Positions 15,959 to 27,627 are shown, numbered from the stretch's first letter. The stretch: DNA of 64,000 nucleotides from Salpingoeca rosetta (GCA_033442325.1 JAWQFM010000020.1:842819-906818); one strand, 5' to 3'. Program-made: numbers and translations. Notes: generated from the letters alone by a model not told the origin.

Positions 15959-17755
15959 TTATCGTGACGCTGTGCTGGAGGAAGCGAAGGAGGACTGGAG
16001 AGAGACAGCAAAGTCGTGCACGTGTGCAAACAGCTGTTGGCTGTGCATCTGTTTGCTGTCCTCGCCAAAGAACTCTGTGATGCGTGTGCTTTCCTCCTTT
16101 GTCCGCTCAAACGCCTCCTGTGCAGTGGCCAGCTTATCCTGGTGACGATGACGAGAGTGATAGTGTTGTGTCGCGTGTGACCATTTGGGAGAGGAAAGAG
16201 AGCAACAAGTCGTCGAGCAGAGTGAAAACACAAATACAAATACAGACAGGGGCACAATGAGTACCTTCACAAGAAGACAGAGACACACAGAGAGACACGT
16301 ACGGTTGCGTGTGTGTAGAAGGAGGCGAGCTCAGGCACGAGCGATTGCACGGTGTCGAGTTTTCGCTCCAGCAGCTGCAAACCTGTGGTGGGGTAGTGTG
16401 CAGAGGTGTGCAGAGGTGTGTATGTGTGTTTGTATGTGTTTGTATGTGTGTGTATGTGTGTGTGTGTGTATGTGTGTATGTGTGTGTATGTGTGTGTGCG
16501 TGCAAAATAGCCATAAGTGATGGGAGCGGAGGAGGAAGTGGCCAATGCATTGCGACAGACAGAGGACAGGATGAGAGTGACAGTTTGCAGTCATACACAG
16601 AGTTGTTGGCATGCATGAAGACGAGAGGACTGCCACGTGTTACCAGTCTTGAGTTTGCGCATATCCTCGCTGACAATGTTGAGGTCGACGTGTCGCGCCT
16701 GCAACAGTGGAGACAGGTGCGACACAAGACGCTCCAGGCAACCAGGCCTGTCGGTGACGATTGTGACAATGGTGGCGATGGTGGTGAGCATTGGCCACGG
16801 TTATGGCCACAAGGAAGGACGAAGTGCTGGGCAGACTTTGTTTGCGCGAGTACACGAGCAACACACACACACACACACACACACACAGGCACAGACACAC
16901 ACGCACGCACGCACAGACACAGACACAGACACAGACACACACACACACGCACGCACGCACAGACACAGACAGACAGACAGACACACACACGCACGCACCA
17001 CTTCCGTTCGAGCGACTGGGCGAGAAAGGCGAGCAGATCGATTTTCTTGTCCGCGGCTGCTTTGATGTCTTTCAACTTACACAGACTGAACACGCACAGA
17101 GGCATTTGTGCGTGTGTGCGTGTGTGGAATTGGCATGATTGAGCACGGATGCACGTGTGAATGCGAGTCAGAGTTCTTCATTCCGGTGGTGTTTCCGTCG
17201 CGGATATTGCGCGTGCATACTTCCATTCTCAACCATACACACACGAACACACACACAACATACGTATACACACGCGCACACACAACATACGCATACACAC
17301 ACGCACACGCGCACATGCACACCTGCTGGCTGAGATGCCGTACGCCTGGCGAGCGCGCAGATGGGGCGGGGCGTACACAGTGTTGGTCATGTTGCCAAGC
17401 TCAAGCGCCTACAGTTGTTGTCAAATGTGTGGACGTGTGCGTGTTGTGTGCGAGTGTGCGTGTGTGTCACAAGGGAGAAAGGGTTGGGAGATGAGTTAGC
17501 AGTGGACACAGCGCAGACAGACAGGCAGGCCGACAGGCAGACAGACGGGCTGGCAGAGATACACACAGCACACCACGAACCATGCGTAGGGCGCGGTGGA
17601 GGTCAGTTGCGTCACGAAGGGCTTTGCATGCGTCGTTGACGGTTGCCAGGGAGCGAAAAATATCGTGCAGGGTGCTTTCAAACTCAAGCTTGAGCTGGAA
17701 GCCCTCAACAATCACAGGCAGCGCAGGGCACTCGTGGTGGATCATCCTGGCATGA

Positions 17756-17823
<68 letters not shown>

Positions 17824-17925
17824 AATTGGCGCATGGTTGTGTTGGGCAGGGAAGGGGGAGGAATGAAGTGAGTGGCAAACGCACAAGTACGCGTGAGCAT
17901 TAAGTGTTTGGGCGAATGGATTGTT

Positions 17926-18000
<75 letters not shown>

Positions 18001-18525
18001 CACACAACAACGACGACTGACCAGAAGAATTTATCTGCCTGTGCGAGCTTCTCTGGCGGTCCCGTATAGAGGGCGATGGCCTGCAGCTCATCGGGTCTAA
18101 GCACGGATGGATGGATGGATGGATGGATGGATGGATGGATGGATGGATGGATGAACGGAGGGATGGATGGATGGGAGCAGTGGTTGGCCGGCAGAAGAGG
18201 AAAGTGCGATCACATCCACATAGGAAGGATGATCAGACAGACAAACGCACATGCACACACACACGCACGCACGTACACAGACAAACACGCACATGCACAC
18301 AGGCACAAGGGAGGGCAGTTGTACTTTGGGAGGGCTTTGCTGAGGATGTGCAGTTCATCTGCGGACCACACGTCTTCATCCAACTCAAGCAGCGACGAGA
18401 TAATGCCCTCAATCCCTTTCACCAGCCTGCACGCGCACGTGCATGCGGATGGGTTGGAGGTGTGAGAGGTGTCTGCCAAAGAAGAGCGCACGGTGACGCA
18501 GGAGTGCACACACGCACACAGCTAC

Positions 18526-18596
<71 letters not shown>

Positions 18597-19233
18597 CGCA
18601 GCGACCTGCCGAAAACCAACACAAAACACGGCACGGACTTGTTGAATCGACGAAGAACAATGCCAACATTGCGGGCGCGCGTGGGATCGATGACAGATAC
18701 AGCTGTGCTGGTGGCTTTCTTGTCTGCAAGTGCACGTTGTGCTAGTTTCCTCTTCTTCTCAGCTGCTCGTTCCTCCTCGCTCTTGCAGAACAGCGCCTCA
18801 AACTCCTGCGCGCGCGCCAGCGTGTTGTGGCATGTATGTGCATGTGTGTGTGCATGTGTGAGTGTTTGAGTGCTTGAGTGAGTGCGTGTGTTAACGCGTG
18901 TGACACCACAGCACCGACGCCAGAATGCAGACAGGTTCCATCCGTCCACCACAGCAGTGCATAACACACACAAAATAAGCCATTAACACACAAGCAGTCA
19001 TCCATCATCATCATCATCATCGTAGCTGACTGACCTTGACATCGACGACCTCGTTGACTGCATTTGGCAGAGCAGTGGCATCTGCCCAGATGGTGTCCCT
19101 GTCCGCAAGGGGATAGCGCACGTGATAGGGATGGTGGTGAGTCGGGGTGAATGAAATGGTAACTGTTTGCTTGGCGGCAGGACGACAGAATACCCAACCA
19201 AGCCACGAATGCACAGACACACAGACACACACA

Positions 19234-19290
<57 letters not shown>

Positions 19291-20437
19291 CAGCCAGCAG
19301 TACCGGAGGCGGTGTGTCGGCACGGTCTTCCAGTGGAGTTTCTTCCCCACGAGTTTGGTTGGCTGTGCTGCTGTAGGTGGTGGTGCTGGCCCAAACCCGT
19401 TCCCAAGCAGCATCGGCGGAGGCGGCGGCGGCGGCGGCGGCGGCGGTGCTCCTGCTCCAAGGTGTGGAGGCGGTGGCGGTGGCGGTGGTGGTGGAATGCC
19501 TGGGCCCAAAGGTGGTGGTGGAGGAGGAGGAGGAGGAGGAGGAGGAGGAGGAGGAGGAGGAGGAACGGTATCGTGTTGACCAGATCCAAGTGATGGTGGT
19601 GGTGGTGGTGGAGGTGGTGGTGATGGCGGTGGGGCTGGCTTGGTTGCAGACGCTGAAGCACAGACGCCGTTCTTCTCTCCACTTGGTGGTTCAGCTTCCT
19701 TCATCTTGGCACCATCGCCTCTGCTATCATCAATCACCGTGTCCTGCTCGTGCTTGTTGGCCGCACCACCCTGCATCTTATTTTCTTCACTCACTGCAGC
19801 CTTTCCTGCACCGGTGTCACCACCCATCACTCCTTCCTTCGACTCCTCCTCGTCCATCTTCACCTCATCCTTCCCTTGTGTTCCTTCCTCCTCTCGGCCA
19901 GCACCATCACCATCATCACTAGAGCAGGAAGAGAGGTCAAGGCGCGGCACGTGCGGGTTCTTCGTCCTGCGACCACTGCCCCCTTTATCAACACCGCCCA
20001 TCGGCTTCCGTCTCCTATCTCGATGCCCTCGCCTCCGCCTCCGCCGTGGCTGTTGCCGATTGTGTTGCTGCTCTCCACATTCACCCTCAACGGTACTGCC
20101 GTTAGCATCTTCCGCACTCGTGTACTCCTCCTCCCCCTCATCATCATTGTCACCGCTGCTGCTTGTGGGCGAGCGGTGTGTGCGGCTGACTGCTTTGCTT
20201 CCAATTGGTGTTGATCGCAGCGGATTTGCGATGCTATTGCGCCAGTGTTGCTGAGGGTTCGGTGGCGTGTGCACTTGTGGTGATGCGTGCACTTGTGGTG
20301 ATGCGTGCATTTGTGGTGATGCGTGCACTTGTGGTGACGCAAGGGCAGTTGCAGCTACCCCTTCATCGTCTCCCTCCTTGCTCTGCAGGCGTGCAGACGT
20401 GTTGGCGCTGCCATGGCTCCCGTCTGATGTCTGCTGC

Positions 20438-20470
<33 letters not shown>

Positions 20471-21979
20471 TGTTGCTGCTTGGCTGAGCGCGCCTGTGCG
20501 CGGGACTGCGCAGTCAATTTTCGACGTCGGTGCCGCCGCACACTATCATGTGTGTATGAGCGAGTGTGAGTGGGTGCGTGTGAGTGAGTGAAGGTAGGTG
20601 AGTGAGCGAGTGTAAGTGGGGAACGACACACAGACACACAGACACACAGACGCAGAGACACATTTGTCACACAGACACATTTGGTCACACACAACCCCAC
20701 TCACATGGACTGCGCCTTTTGGAGTTTCTCGTTGCGCTCCTTCTGCCGCACGTCCTGTGCATGCTGCAGCACAGACTTGGTGTCGCGAGCAGCAGCCGGC
20801 ACCTGTGAGACATGCAGCACATGTAACCCTGCGCCCTCCAGTCGACGAAGTGGACTTGGCAGCTCAAGCACTTGACGTGCCTCGCTCGCCCCAAGTAACA
20901 CTTTCCCTCGCCCACCGCCGCCCTGGTGCTGGTGATGCTGCTGGTAGTGCTCTTGTTGTGAAGACTGGGGCATGTGCAGACTGCCACTAATGCTGCCTCC
21001 ATCACCAGCAACAGCAGCAACATTATCGCGGGCTGTGCTGGTCTCGGGATTGGCGGGTGCACATGTGGCGGTGGTGGGGTCGATCGTGGCAGCGGCAAAG
21101 GCATTTCCTGTTGCCATCATTGGCAGTGAAGGCTGTGACATGTGCTGGTGTGCCGTGGACATGGCAGATGGTTCCTCGTGCTCGTGGTGGTCTGGTGCCT
21201 GGACGAGTGCGGTGAAGCTAGAAGCAGTCGCAGTACCAGTCGTGACGCCGGTGGTAGCGTGTCTTGAAGCACTCACCATTGATGATGCTGGTAAAGTAGA
21301 CGGGCACGAGCCATGACGCTGTCCGCCGCACACCTGCGAACCGTCGACACTGCCACCACCAGCACCGCCACTTTCGCTGCATATTCTCGGCGCTGTTGTA
21401 CCCACAACTTCAGTCACTGCTGTTGCTGGCATTGACACTGTCGCAGCACTGAGACGTTGTTGTTGTTGTTGTTGCTGTTGTTGTTGTTGTGTGACAGGTT
21501 GGTTAGCGTGACTGGTGCCATGTATAAAGTCTTGCTCGCCGACACTAACATCCTCAACAGCACTGCGCTCGGCTGTACTGTCGTACAGCTGCTCCTCCAC
21601 CTCGGCTGCTTCATCGTCAATCAGGTCGGTGACATGGACGGTCTGTGGTTGCGGCGCCACGATGGAGTTGGCCTCCCATATGCTCTGCTTCTCCAGCCGC
21701 TTGCACAGCGTGTGTGCTGTTTGCATGTCGTTCTGCGCACGGCACAGTGCAAACGTGGCCAGATGCGTGGGGAAGCCACTTCCTTCCAAGGCATGCACGT
21801 GCTGCTGATCGGGTTTCAATACAAACAGCGCACTCAGCATCTGCAATGCCAGTGTGAGTGGTGGCGGTGTTGTGAACCCGGCGTCAAGGCGTGCCGTACT
21901 GTCTGCCACTGCGGCAGCGAGCAGTTCGTGTAAGCGGCTGCACGCACCAGGTGGACACCACGGTGGCAGCTCCTGGTTG

Positions 21980-22013
<34 letters not shown>

Positions 22014-22519
22014 GATCGTCATCGTGTTGGTCAAAGTGCGGCAGCGCGACGCGCGTCTTGTACGTAATGTGCAGCGAGTCCACACACCGCTCCCACTGGC
22101 GCGACGTTGCTGTTGTCTCCAGGTTGCCTGGTGTGATGCGATACGCCTGGTTTGGCAGCCAGCCCGTGTGGAACCAGTGCCGAAACAGCTCTTTCTCCGT
22201 CTCCTCGCCATTGTCATCGACATACGACAGTCTGCACACGAGCAGGCAGTTGCCTACAGCACGCACGCCGTCCATGGGCGCAATCATGTCATCCTCGGTG
22301 CCCCTCAGCTGGTTATTGATCTTGCTCGAATACACGAGCTTGTCGCCCTCCAACACCTCAAGCACAATGTTGCCGGATAGCGTGCGGTCACTGGCGTGCA
22401 TGTGTGCGTGTGCGTGCGTGTTTGGCTGTGTGGTCATGGCAATTTGTTGCAGCGACAACTCCTGTGCACGTGGGATGCTGGCCTTGAGAGCCATCACAAA
22501 GTGCGTCAACACCCTGCCA

Positions 22520-22579
<60 letters not shown>

Positions 22580-22980
22580 GGGCAGGGGGTTGAGTGGGTG
22601 TAAAGAAGGTTTAAGTGGGCTGATCGGGGTTGTGATCACATCCCAGAATACGGCAACAAACATTGGCACGCACACATGCTTTGTACAATTAACAGTCCGT
22701 ACGCACATCTGCACATGCACACACACAACACACACACACACGCACACACTGACACACCTTCACAGCAAACACACACACATACACATACACAGCTATACCT
22801 AATTCGGAAGCGGGTGATGATGGCTTTTGGAGACAGCTGCCTGAGCGTGCAAAAGTGCTCGAGGGCCTCTTGTGGCGACTGCACCTGTTCTGTGAACAGT
22901 AAGTACGCTGCAATGGCCAACGACGAGCGGGACTGCAACCACATGCATCCACATACACAGATGCAACACACACATACGCG

Positions 22981-23026
<46 letters not shown>

Positions 23027-23840
23027 AATCACATGGTGTGGGTGAGTGCGGGCTCGTGTGCAGTCGCATGAATGTGACCGCTTGTGAATGCAAGTGATCT
23101 GATGTTGCACAGGCACGTTCCGCATGTTCTCGTCACCATCAGGCCGCAATGCAACAGCGCACCTTGCTGTCTTTGCAATGCACAACAACATAATGGCTGA
23201 AGCTCAAGCGAAGAAAGGCTGCAGCGGTGTGGCAGAAGGTGAACAGGCTGGCCAAGCTGGGACACTTGCTGGAGATCGTGAGGCGGCAGACCTATCCACA
23301 TCGAGATTTGCAACGGGATGGGAGGTGGTGAGGCAGGGGGCGACTTGGTAGGCGCTTCTTTGCCTAGTCGAAGGCAAGGGAGAAAAGCGCTTGTCCAAGG
23401 CATGGCGAGGATGCATCGATGGGCGCAAGGGTGCAAAAGAGCGTGGTGGCACAGACTTGATTGTTGAAGAGAGCTGGATCGTAATGGCACTCGTTGGGAG
23501 CAAGGTTGAAGAGGAGGAAGTGGTCTTGACATCTTTGCTTGAGATGCTCTGCGAGCTCGGCCGCGTTGATGGCATGAGCGCGCTAGCAGCGAAGCAGCAG
23601 GAAGGAGGGCAAGAGAATCACAGAGCAGTGAGTGCACAGTGCATTCCAGATAAGCAAGTCCAATGTGCTGTAAGCGTCATGGACGAGTGGTAGCGTGGAC
23701 GAGTGGAAGCGTGGACGAGTGGTAGCGTGGACGAGTGGTAGCGTGGACGAGTGGTAGCGTGGACGAGTGGAAGCGTGGACGAGTGGTAGCGTGGACGAGT
23801 GGTAGCGTGGACGAGTGGTAGCGTGGACGAGTGGTAGCGG

Positions 23841-23911
<71 letters not shown>

Positions 23912-23995
23912 ACACCTTGACGCTTCTGTTGGCCCAGGGTTGTCCGCATGCTAGCAAGCTGTCTGTTATGTCCGTGATATCCAGCTCGTTGTCTG

Positions 23996-24066
<71 letters not shown>

Positions 24067-24284
24067 GTCATGGTGTGCGCGTCTGCTGCGATGTCGTGTG
24101 CAAGCAATGCATACAACCAACGCAACAGGCAAGCAAGCAGAGTCCGAAGTATGACAGGCTTCTTATTCGTCCTTCCCCGGTCCCTCTCGTGCACCGTCAC
24201 ATCAGCGATGTTGTCACCTTGCAGGGACGCAGATCGGCCGCCACCAAAAGGGTGTAGCACGTTGTTGAGCTTGACGGCACACAT
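15959..24284 (-). CDS. Formin with N-terminal PTEN-like phosphatase + C2 domains, UBA-like helix bundle, FH1 and FH2 (multi-exon; start approximate)
   Basis: PTEN-like segments [15 protein letters not shown] and [11 protein letters not shown]|[14 protein letters not shown]2-tensin type GNCLLVC...[11 protein letters not shown]. Poly-Pro FH1 at ~19370-19640. FH2 motifs [38 protein letters not shown] and KLKDIK. Stop at 15959. Confidence 0.85.
18105..18172. repeat. (GGAT)n microsatellite in a formin intron
   Basis: Seen directly. Confidence 0.9.
23681..23840. repeat. 16-bp minisatellite GGACGAGTGG(T/A)AGCGT x10 in a formin intron
   Basis: Ten head-to-tail units without spacers. Confidence 0.95.
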
Positions 24285-24380
24285 GTCACCTCCTCCTCAT
24301 CGTTGTCCTCTGACTTTGCTTGGCTTTGCTTGCTTGCTTGCTTGGTTTCCGTTATTCGCACAATTCCCGCGCCTTTTTCC

Positions 24381-24458
<78 letters not shown>

Positions 24459-24913
24459 GTGTGTGTGTTGTGTGTCCCTCTGTTTGTGTGTGTCTGTGTC
24501 TGTCCCATGCAAGTCCAAGTTCATGCTGTACTTGTGTGTTCACACCACAAAGGCAAGGCAAGTCACGCATCTCAAAGCCAGACAACAGGAAGCACATGCG
24601 CGTTGTGTTGGCAATGAATGGTGGTTGGTTATGAGTGTTGACAAGACAACAAACAAGTAAGGAACGTACATGACCGAGGCAAGAGAACGAAAAAAGACCC
24701 ATGCAAACGATCATGCGACAACATAACGTTGGTTGGTACGTGGGCGTTGTTGTTGTTGAGGTGCTGGTGGATCAGGGCGAGTTTGGGGAGGGGGGGAGAG
24801 ACTGATAGTTGCAAATCATGGTCATTGCAACATCATGACTTATTGCTCATCATGGTGGTTGCAGACAATGGCGATTGCACAAGCCACCCACCCACCGGCT
24901 CACTCCGTGAGCT

Positions 24914-27627
24914 TTACTCGAACTTGATACCCTGCGCAAGTGGGAGCTCGGTGCCGTAGTTCATGGTGATGGTGGAGCGGCGCATGTACTGCTTCCAGGC
25001 ATCGCTGCCAGACTCCCGGCCGCCGCCCGTCTCCTTCTCGCCGCCAAAGGCACCGCCAATCTCGGCGCCGTTGGTCGGGATGTTCACGTTGATGATGCCC
25101 GTGTCGGAGCCAAAGGGCCCAATCCACTTGAAGATCTTCGACGGGTCGCGGGTGAACACGCTGCTGGAGAGACCCTGGCTGACCGAGTTGTTGATGGCAA
25201 TGGCCTCCTCAAAGGACTTGCACTTGGTGATGTACAGGATCGGGGCGAAGGTCTCCGTCATGATGCAGCCGACGTCAGGGCGTGGGCACTCCACGAGCGT
25301 GGGCTCAACAAAGTTGCCGGGGAGGTCAGACAGCACGTTGCCGCCATGCAGGATGGTGCAGCCCTCGGCCTTTGCTTGCTCAATCATCTGAGGAGGGGGG
25401 GGGGGAAGAGTGGGTGAGAGGTTGGAGGGGGAGGGAAGAAGAATAGTGAGGGACGAAGAGTAGTGAGTGAACAGTGCGTGAACAGTACGGGCAGAAGAAC
25501 CAAGCACGAGATTGGGTGCAATCAAGGGAGCGAAGGGTGAATGTGCATGTGTGTGTGTATGCCATGACACACACATGTAGTATATACGCACACACACATG
25601 CACACACACACATACACACACATACATACACACACATACATACACACAATACGCACACACATGCATACACTCACACACACGCACACACAAAGGACTGACC
25701 TTTGTGTAGTTCTCGACGGCCTGCTTGGTGTGGAGGGGACCGCAGAGGGTGCCGTCCTGGAGCGGGTGGCCAATGCGCACAGAGGCATACGCCTTCTTCA
25801 GGCGCTCAACAACCTCGTCATACACATCCTCGTGCAGCACCTGCACACACAAAAAAGGAGGAAAAAAACATGGTCAAGAGGAGGGGTGGGAGATGTGTGA
25901 GCAGATGAGCGGATGGGGGCGTTGTGACAAAAAAGGAGTGGGTGGCGGCGATAAAGCGAAAGAAGGGAGACACCATGGAATGGACCAAGGCGACAGTGCG
26001 GAAGCACAGGCCAGAAACCGCAACACGTGGCGCCACGCGCAATCAGTAGCAACACGAAGATACGGCACGACACGCAGGGCCACGGCAAGCGAGCATGAGG
26101 AGACTGACCAGGCGGCGGCAGGTGGTGCAGCGCTGGCCGGCGGTACCGACAGAGGCGAAGAGGACGGAGCGGACAACCATCTCGAGATCGGCGTCATCCA
26201 TGACGACAATGGCGTTGTTGCCGCCGAGCTCGAGCAGGGAGCGGCCAAAGCGGGACTGGACGGTGACGCCAACCTCGCGGCCGACCTTGGTGCTGCCCGT
26301 GAAGGAGAGGAGGTCCACGCGGCGGTCGGCGCACAGGGTGTGGCCAACATCCGCGCCGCCGCACACCATGGAGATGATGGCCGGGTTGATGTTGTTGCGC
26401 TCAAGCACCTCGGCCATGACCTTGGTGAGGGCAATGCTGGTGAGTGGGGTGGTTGGGGAGCCCTTCCAGACGTGCGTGTTGCCCGCAACGAGGGAGAGGG
26501 CAAGGTTCCAGCCGGCGACGGCGACAGGGAAGTTGAAGGCGGTGATCATGCCAACGAGACCGCGCGGGTTCCACTGCTCCATGAGCATATGGTCAGGGCC
26601 TGGCGGAAAAGAAGAAGAAACGTTGGCAGAGGAGAGGAATGGAGGAGTGGGTGGGTGGGTTAGGGTGAGGTAAAAATCGTGTGAGCTTTGAAGGAAAAGG
26701 AAAAAAAAGAAAGAAAAAAAAAGATGATACACCACAACACGGACAGCGATAACACGCAAAGCGGCAACACGTATGCACGCATGTGCGCACACACACGCAC
26801 ATGATGCACACGCTGCATACACATACACACACGCGCGCACAGACTTGACTTTATGTTAGTCTACTTACGCTCGGAGGGGAGGATGCTGCCGTTGATGGAG
26901 CGGCTGAGGCCGAGAGCGTAGTCGCAAATGTCGACAAACTCCTGCACCTCGCCACGGGCCTCGGGCAGGATCTTGCCGTTCTCAAGCGTCAGCTATCAAC
27001 AACAAGATGGGTAGAGCGGAAACACACGGAGGAGAAAAGCGGGTTCGTGTGAGCAGTGGCACGTAGCAGTAACTGCAGTAACTGCAGCAGCAGCAGCAGC
27101 AGTAGCAGCAGAACTTTGCCGTTGCCGTTGCTGTTGCCGTTCAAGACCATGACAAGGCGACACATGTCCAGCTAGTAACGCCAAGGCAATTGCATATTGC
27201 ATATTATGCACGAAAAACAAAGCAATCACACGTTTGAACTGACCACTTGGGAGAGGGACTCGAGGTTCTCGCGGAGGGCGTCGCCAATCTGACGGACAAT
27301 GTCGCCGCGGGCGGGCATGGTGAGCTTTGCCCACTCGGGCCAGGCCTCCTTTGCGGCGGCAATGGCCTCTTCCATCTGCTCGGGGGTGCCGTAGGAGACG
27401 CTGGCAATGCCGTTGTTGGTGCCTGGGTCCAGGGAGGTGTACTCCTGGCCCTTGCCCTGCTGCCACTTGCCAGTGAACACGCCCTGGTTGACGTCCTTTG
27501 CCGTGAGGCCGGCGTTGGCCAGGATGCCCTCAACGTCAATCTGCGGGGTCTGCGACGACATAGCGCGTGCGCCAAGAGCACGGCCAGCCTGGGATGCCGC
27601 GCGGGTTGCCTTCATGAGAGACGCCAT
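24914..27627 (-). CDS. ALDH7A1: Aldehyde dehydrogenase family 7 (antiquitin / alpha-aminoadipate semialdehyde dehydrogenase), 5 exons
   Basis: Motifs [29 protein letters not shown], catalytic [48 protein letters not shown], and C-terminal [10 protein letters not shown]. Confidence 0.97.

Follow-up and report, generated by a model that had tools for sequence, protein, structure and literature searches.

A choanoflagellate PTEN-formin with a complete CX5R loop and a probably non-catalytic phosphatase-like head

Plant class II formins, such as For2A of Physcomitrium and AtFH13/14 of Arabidopsis, carry a PTEN-like PTP-C2 head in front of their FH1-FH2 domains that serves phosphoinositide or membrane targeting, and in the moss protein For2A the PTEN domain binds phosphatidylinositol 3,5-bisphosphate, PI(3,5)P2, and thereby targets the formin (PMC3410418). 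The choanoflagellate “PTEN-formins” were named by Pruyne 2017 (PMC5628938), who linked them to those of chytrids and heterokonts and gave as opisthokont representatives S. rosetta PTSG_07580, M. brevicollis MONBRDRAFT_25412, Spizellomyces SPPG_06651/06650 and Encephalitozoon Eint_101200. Here we analyse a stretch of 64,000 nucleotides from the choanoflagellate Salpingoeca rosetta (GCA_033442325.1, JAWQFM010000020.1:842819-906818), referred to below as the window, in which positions are counted from the first letter. The gene on its minus strand at 15959-24284 is PTSG_07580 (XP_004991377.1; Pruyne 2017 S1 Table), and it probably encodes a single PTEN-formin of 1566 residues in which a non-catalytic PTP-C2 targeting head is joined to an FH1-FH2 actin nucleator.

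The peptides encoded by the window exons are identical to those in the ‘Sro PTSG_07580’ rows of Pruyne 2017 S1 Text, and the same exon-exon joins appear in these rows (VVDVK/EFEALF, ADKFFW/MIHHECP, HRALRM/ALELGN, KLKTG/LQLLERK and FYTHAT/DKLATAQ, where the stroke marks the junction). Because peptides and joins agree, the gene can be equated with PTSG_07580, and its architecture was already known: the same study draws XP_004991377.1 with the order PTP-C2-FH1-FH2 that is seen here. The novelty implied by a sequence-only reading of this DNA gives way to the earlier description of PTSG_07580 as a PTEN-formin (PMC5628938). The terms ‘catalytic’, ‘active site’ and ‘cysteine’ were not found in the main text of that paper, and PTSG_07580 was not found in the other papers of the literature searched. 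What is added beyond the published account is the retention of the CX5R loop, the decay of this loop in relatives, the loss of the general acid and a UBA-like domain. PTEN-formins are the one formin subtype that was kept by choanoflagellates and lost in animals (Pruyne 2017), so the way in which they work is relevant to the changes in the actin toolkit when animals arose. The residue-level details leave the overall picture unchanged; they make a routine and testable question more precise, in a model organism that lends itself to experiment.

The coding region consists of 17 exons and 16 introns, begins with the ATG at 24284 and ends with the stop codon at 15959-15961. Computed junction by junction, the exon chain yields a single open reading frame of 1566 codons that is free of internal stops, and each of the introns, which measure 162-333 nucleotides, has GT-AG borders. 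Between 24284 and 15959 the minus-strand segments without stop codons encode, in order, pieces of a PTEN-like phosphatase, a PTEN-type C2 domain, a long low-complexity sequence, poly-proline and FH2; within the complete frame the order is PTEN-like PTP, C2, UBA-like domain, a low-complexity linker of about 700 residues, FH1 and FH2. The extent of 15959-24284 proposed by the sequence-only reading coincides with this 17-exon model, the PTEN-C2-FH1-FH2 architecture that it described is supported by domain matches and by the single frame, and the holozoan source that it suspected is indeed a choanoflagellate. An intron that had been suspected between IAMTTQ and SGNIVLE was dropped, as this stretch is without a GT donor and is coding.

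A single junction joins the PTEN half to the formin half, namely intron 6 (20543-20704, 162 nucleotides, donor GTGAGT, acceptor GATAG/). It follows exon 6 (20705-22513, 1809 nucleotides), which encodes the end of the PTP domain, the C2 domain, a poly-Q run, the UBA-like domain and the N-terminal half of the low-complexity linker. The sole in-frame stop between the two halves is a TGA at 20701-20703, and since a single stop divides two long reading frames here, the locus might be taken for two adjacent genes with separate PTEN-C2 and FH1-FH2 transcripts. We regard this as extremely improbable: the TGA sits within the consensus donor of exon 6 (AT/GTGAGT) with an acceptor in phase 162 nucleotides downstream, the orthologous transcripts of three other choanoflagellates run uninterrupted across the place of intron 6, and the published annotation of XP_004991377.1 is PTP-C2-FH1-FH2.

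These orthologs were recovered by database searches in which separate exons or database orthologs served as queries. An exhaustive protein search, for which the exon with C2 and the sequence downstream of it was the query, yielded five relatives, three of them transcriptome reading frames of other choanoflagellates. PTEN_C2 and FH2 are encoded together in a complete reading frame of 1333 residues in Hartaetosiga gracilis and in complete frames of 1196 and 1227 residues in Acanthoeca spectabilis, and a transcript of Choanoeca flexa (974 residues, N-terminally short) continues from C2 through to FH2. In tblastn the H. gracilis protein matches positions 23579 to 15992 of the window collinearly. 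Neither the S. rosetta protein itself nor that of M. brevicollis was among the results of the exhaustive search with C2 and UBA, and word-based protein searches returned the query as their sole match; in the alignment search proline-rich words probably swamped the result. The sequence evidence that both halves belong to one 17-exon transcript is indirect but strong.

The PTP domain, of PTEN-like phosphatase fold, was located at 22460-23992 by aligning the orthologs to the window with tblastn and is assembled from exon 2 (23992-23916), exon 3 (23582-23457), exon 4 (23291-23163), exon 5 (22932-22799) and the start of exon 6 (from 22513), all on the minus strand. In front of it, exon 1 (24218-24284) supplies the ATG, 22 N-terminal codons and one further nucleotide before the donor CAAG/GTGACA, and the spliced N-terminus presumably resembles YQEDGFDLDLTYI at the N-terminus of PTEN. 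A Pfam scan of the short PTP exons gave no matches, and the assignment runs through the H. gracilis ortholog, to which exons 2-5 of the window align and whose N-terminus matches auxilin, Ci-VSP and PTEN structures in the PDB with E-values of 1e-13 to 1e-11. Among solved structures the PTEN-like domain of auxilin/GAK (PDB 3N0A) matches best, with E 1e-13 for the ortholog sequence and E 1e-7 for the fold of the window C2.

The P-loop lies at 22927-23180 and is split by intron 4 (23162-22933) into HCKDSK and SR, with Cys129 and Arg135 of the model at the places of the nucleophile and the phosphate-binding residue of active PTEN-type phosphatases. The exon at 23291-23163 ends in VVVHCKDSK before the donor AAG/GTGCGC, the acceptor TTGCAG/ directly precedes 22932, and both boundaries are in phase 0, so that the splice from 23163 to 22932 reads HCKDSKSR; this CX5R is complete, with the His in front of it and a Ser behind it. 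The same loop is found unbroken, as HCKDSKAR, in the H. gracilis transcript. PTEN and the voltage-sensing phosphatases (VSPs; 1D5R, 3AWE) have the same PTP and C2 fold and the pattern H-C-K-x-x-K-x-R-(S/T) in common with the S. rosetta head, which differs from them in having neither the Asp/His of their WPD-like loop nor the two Gly of the P-loop. Each Gly of HCxxGxxR is replaced by Ser, and an Asp stands at the second loop position. Where the general-acid loop of PTEN and the VSPs is expected, the window encodes ISSKCPSL (23253-23276), with Ser in the place of Asp. The HMMER alignment sets ISS-TCPSL of H. gracilis opposite IDDHNVPTL of Ci-VSP; the general-acid Asp (PTEN D92, Ci-VSP D331) is thus replaced in the ortholog alignment, and none of the five sequences compared has an Asp at this position. 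The sequence-only reading had anticipated both the creation of CX5R by this splice and the replacement of the WPD-loop Asp, and the two observations hold at the level of the phase-0 junction and of the loop itself. In the TI-loop, too, the Gln position appears changed when compared with what we take to be the PTEN sequence, KGVTIPSQRR.

The relatives show how the loop varies around this state. In a genomic contig of an uncultured relative (L001, Logan accession SRR14727191, 37% GC), whose C2 domain is the closest at 41% identity, the P-loop splices to HCKDAK/KSSS and the Arg is lost. It is lost as well in a Choanoeca-like metagenome contig from ENA ERZ27317262 (L002, 60% GC), which splices to HCSDGK/LLSG through the sole in-frame acceptor that yields the conserved AIAAY. 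In S. rosetta and in both contigs a phase-0 intron interrupts the P-loop at the same position, behind its second Lys (L001:1290-1480, L002:255-450). In Acanthoeca the loop reads HEHTGHSL, with neither Cys nor Arg remaining. Of the five sequences compared (S. rosetta, H. gracilis, L001, L002 and Acanthoeca), two thus retain the Arg and four the Cys, which points to repeated loss; with the Arg or Cys gone from three of the four relatives, catalysis would not be under family-wide constraint. Among the described systems, auxilin offers a close likeness, since its P-loop (HCLDG) has the Cys, with Asp in second place, and the general acid is missing; its loop, HCLDGRAAS, differs in lacking the Arg at the CX5R position, and auxilin is fused to a J domain whereas the S. 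rosetta protein is fused to FH1-FH2. The PTEN-like domain of auxilin is non-catalytic. Plant class II heads lack the catalytic-site Arg, in contrast to the S. rosetta head, which keeps both Cys and Arg, and stramenopile PTEN-formins retain the P-loop Arg as S. rosetta does; these are reportedly without the His of HCxxGxxR, while S. rosetta keeps the His and lacks the Gly (Grunt 2008).

The C2 domain (22051-22461, about residues 196-332) is encoded within exon 6. Pfam PF10409 (PTEN_C2) matches it with E 5e-5 and 23.5 bits, below the cut-off of 27.1, and an AlphaFold2 model of exon 6 shows a C2 beta-sandwich with a pLDDT (predicted local distance difference test) of about 70-83. Foldseek relates the window C2 to auxilin, PTEN and Ci-VSP at E-values of 1e-7 to 1e-5. 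The domain carries a strongly acidic loop at 22189-22224, and the H. gracilis ortholog is likewise acidic there. Between PTP and C2, exon 6 contains a His/Ala-rich insertion (22393-22422) of CA-repeat-like DNA, which the H. gracilis ortholog lacks; since the insertion has no GT donor, it is apparently translated.

The changes of the general acid and of the P-loop Gly, the losses of Arg and Cys in relatives and the rank of auxilin as best match together suggest that the head is a pseudophosphatase. The PTP-C2 head would then act as a targeting or ligand-binding module, as in auxilin, tensin and the plant class II formins, and would position the formin on a membrane or a partner instead of dephosphorylating phosphoinositides. 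The intact CX5R of S. rosetta would be an ancestral remnant, and the P-loop, which keeps Cys, Arg and two Lys, might still hold a phosphate group, making the head perhaps a natural substrate trap. By analogy with moss For2A, the head may also bind lipid. Counted toward a non-catalytic head is the presence of canonical PTEN in the same genome: a gene with the P-loop HCKAGKGRTG lies at G000:C30:231500-233800 and a second, with HCKGGKGRTG, at G000:C27:395400-397600, both followed by PTEN_C2 exons.

The sequence-only reading had considered that the protein might hydrolyse phosphoinositides as well as nucleate actin, which would make the head a working PTEN-type phosphatase. The full H-C-K-x-x-K-x-R-S loop of S. 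rosetta and H. gracilis speaks for this, as the two Lys are, we assume, those that contact the inositol phosphate in PTEN, and some Cys phosphatases, for example the myotubularins, work without a WPD-loop Asp. Against it stand the replacement of the general-acid Asp by Ser in S. rosetta and all relatives compared, the replacement of both Gly and the Asp within the loop, the loss of the Arg in two close relatives and of Cys and Arg in Acanthoeca, and the canonical PTEN elsewhere in the genome. A working phosphatase is therefore unlikely, and the suggested hydrolysis finds no confirmation in a head without general acid and P-loop Gly whose Arg or Cys has gone in most relatives.

Several points weigh against a single PTEN-formin with a non-catalytic targeting head. 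S. rosetta and H. gracilis retain the His, the Cys, both Lys, the Arg and the Ser after it, which makes residual or unusual catalysis conceivable. The acidic C2 loop occupies what we take to be the place of the basic CBR3 membrane loop of PTEN, making it a poor fit to simple anionic-lipid binding in the style of PTEN, and the N-terminus of the PTEN-formin is only weakly basic. As to the gene model, its splice junctions depend on GT-AG borders, on transcripts of the orthologs and on the annotation already published, and the donor of exon 9 (CC/GTGTTT) is weak, the weakest in the model.

The formin half begins with FH1 (19375-19641), whose 89 residues include 57 Pro in four poly-proline tracks. 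It is followed by a complete FH2 (15962-19344), which was delimited by Pfam, tblastn and the PTSG_07580 rows and extends from KKLHWKTV in the last part of exon 7 to the C-terminus in exon 17. Four collinear fragments of the domain are matched by Pfam PF02181 (profile positions 43-97, 166-206, 229-256 and 322-368), and the FH2 of the ortholog matches mDia1, DAAM1 and INF2 in the PDB at about E 1e-19; exon 9 alone gave no match in a phmmer search of the PDB. The alignment of the ortholog with mDia1 places GIV opposite SIF and KLREFK opposite KLRDTK, and the equivalents in the window are NVGIVLRRF (18650-18670) and KLKDIKA (17058-17078). The aligned Ile and Lys are presumably the actin contacts I845 and K994 of mDia1 and I1431 and K1601 of Bni1p, and their retention, first noted from the bare sequence, is supported by this alignment through the ortholog to mDia1. 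The FH1-FH2 unit would be expected to nucleate and elongate actin filaments like other formins. The relevance to the microvillar collar that the sequence-only reading suggested is speculative. No DAD-like tail was found after FH2.

Between C2 and FH1 the protein contains a further domain (21664-21879, residues 390-461, with a three-helix core at about residues 414-453) that was delimited by alignment, profile search, AlphaFold2 and Foldseek. It corresponds to a block of about 70 residues common to the window and all five relatives, with invariant P, L, L, D, A, H and C. A profile of this block searched against PDB sequences found UBA domains in all five of its best matches (NUB1, UBAC1, plant UBP14 and Ede1), although at marginal E-values of 0.03-0.75, and one of the six members matched Pfam UBA (E 0.18). 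AlphaFold2 predicts three helices in the window segment (25-33, 38-47 and 52-64) with a pLDDT of 88-90 over the core, and the block folds alike in the longer exon 6 model. Almost all of the 50 Foldseek matches listed are UBA or UBA-like (EF-Ts, NAC, CUE, SOUBA). The best UBA matches reach a probability of 0.99 and root-mean-square deviations of 0.3-1.0 Å over 33-42 residues, with E-values that are not significant because the fold is so small. At the position of the MGF loop three of the six sequences have GF, two GV and one KY. No report of a UBA domain in PTEN-formins was found in the literature searched, the FHOD3 paper PMC3002041 aside, and neither UBA nor ubiquitin was found as a term in the text of Pruyne 2017, so the UBA-like domain appears to be previously unreported. 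It may add a contact to protein or ubiquitin.

Since the Cys, the Arg and two Lys of the P-loop are kept without the general acid, a substrate trap or very slow phosphatase is conceivable. A more elaborate and rather doubtful proposal is that the head of S. rosetta and Hartaetosiga has this role toward 3-phosphoinositides, with the UBA-like domain adding ubiquitin or partner input. Were it true, actin nucleation would be tied to a specific lipid patch, and the protein would be a lipid-and-ubiquitin-gated formin that was lost in animals.

Published trees bear on where this architecture came from. In the PTEN-domain tree of Pruyne 2017 (PMC5628938) the choanoflagellate and fungal PTEN-formins group with the heterokont ones (bootstrap 78), and the author argues for an ancient PTEN-formin; the FH2 of PTSG_07580 clusters with the M. 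brevicollis PTEN-formin (bootstrap 99), and PTEN-formins are also reported from chytrids and a microsporidian. The FH2 trees of that study and of the chytrid preprint of Prostak et al. keep the non-plant PTEN-formins apart from plant class II. Fusions independent of plant class II are favoured by the preprint and by Grunt 2008.

It has to be asked, then, whether the architecture was acquired laterally from plants or algae, or assembled independently within choanoflagellates. Consistent with such an origin are the FH2 trees, in which there is no joining to plant class II, and the independent plant and stramenopile fusions argued by Grunt 2008. However, the presence of orthologs in both craspedid and acanthoecid choanoflagellates, together with introns that are rich in (CA)n and a GC content typical of the host, argues against recent lateral transfer, the chytrid and microsporidian examples of Pruyne 2017 extend the distribution further, and the grouping with heterokonts at bootstrap 78 favours old vertical descent with losses. 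We consider a lateral or choanoflagellate-specific origin very unlikely, and the lateral origin entertained by the sequence-only reading is not sustained by a PTEN-domain tree that unites choanoflagellate, fungal and heterokont proteins. An origin independent of plant class II is a possibility raised by the literature.

Two Arg-rich clusters (20005-20046 and 20518-20538), the second of which reads RRHRRRK, lie in the disordered linker that connects the UBA-like domain with FH1; a basic patch is also present in H. gracilis at the place of the second cluster. These clusters may represent a nuclear-localisation motif or one for acidic lipids. Most of the 16 introns contain (CA)n or (GT)n runs of 18-43 units, and intron 2 contains, at 23680-23839, a 16-nucleotide minisatellite in 10 copies of 97% identity. 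Just upstream on the same strand lies the last exon of an apparent aldehyde dehydrogenase (24914-25852; ALDH7/antiquitin-like as judged by eye); as this exon ends at about 24914, the 5′ region of the formin gene is confined to about 24300-24900.

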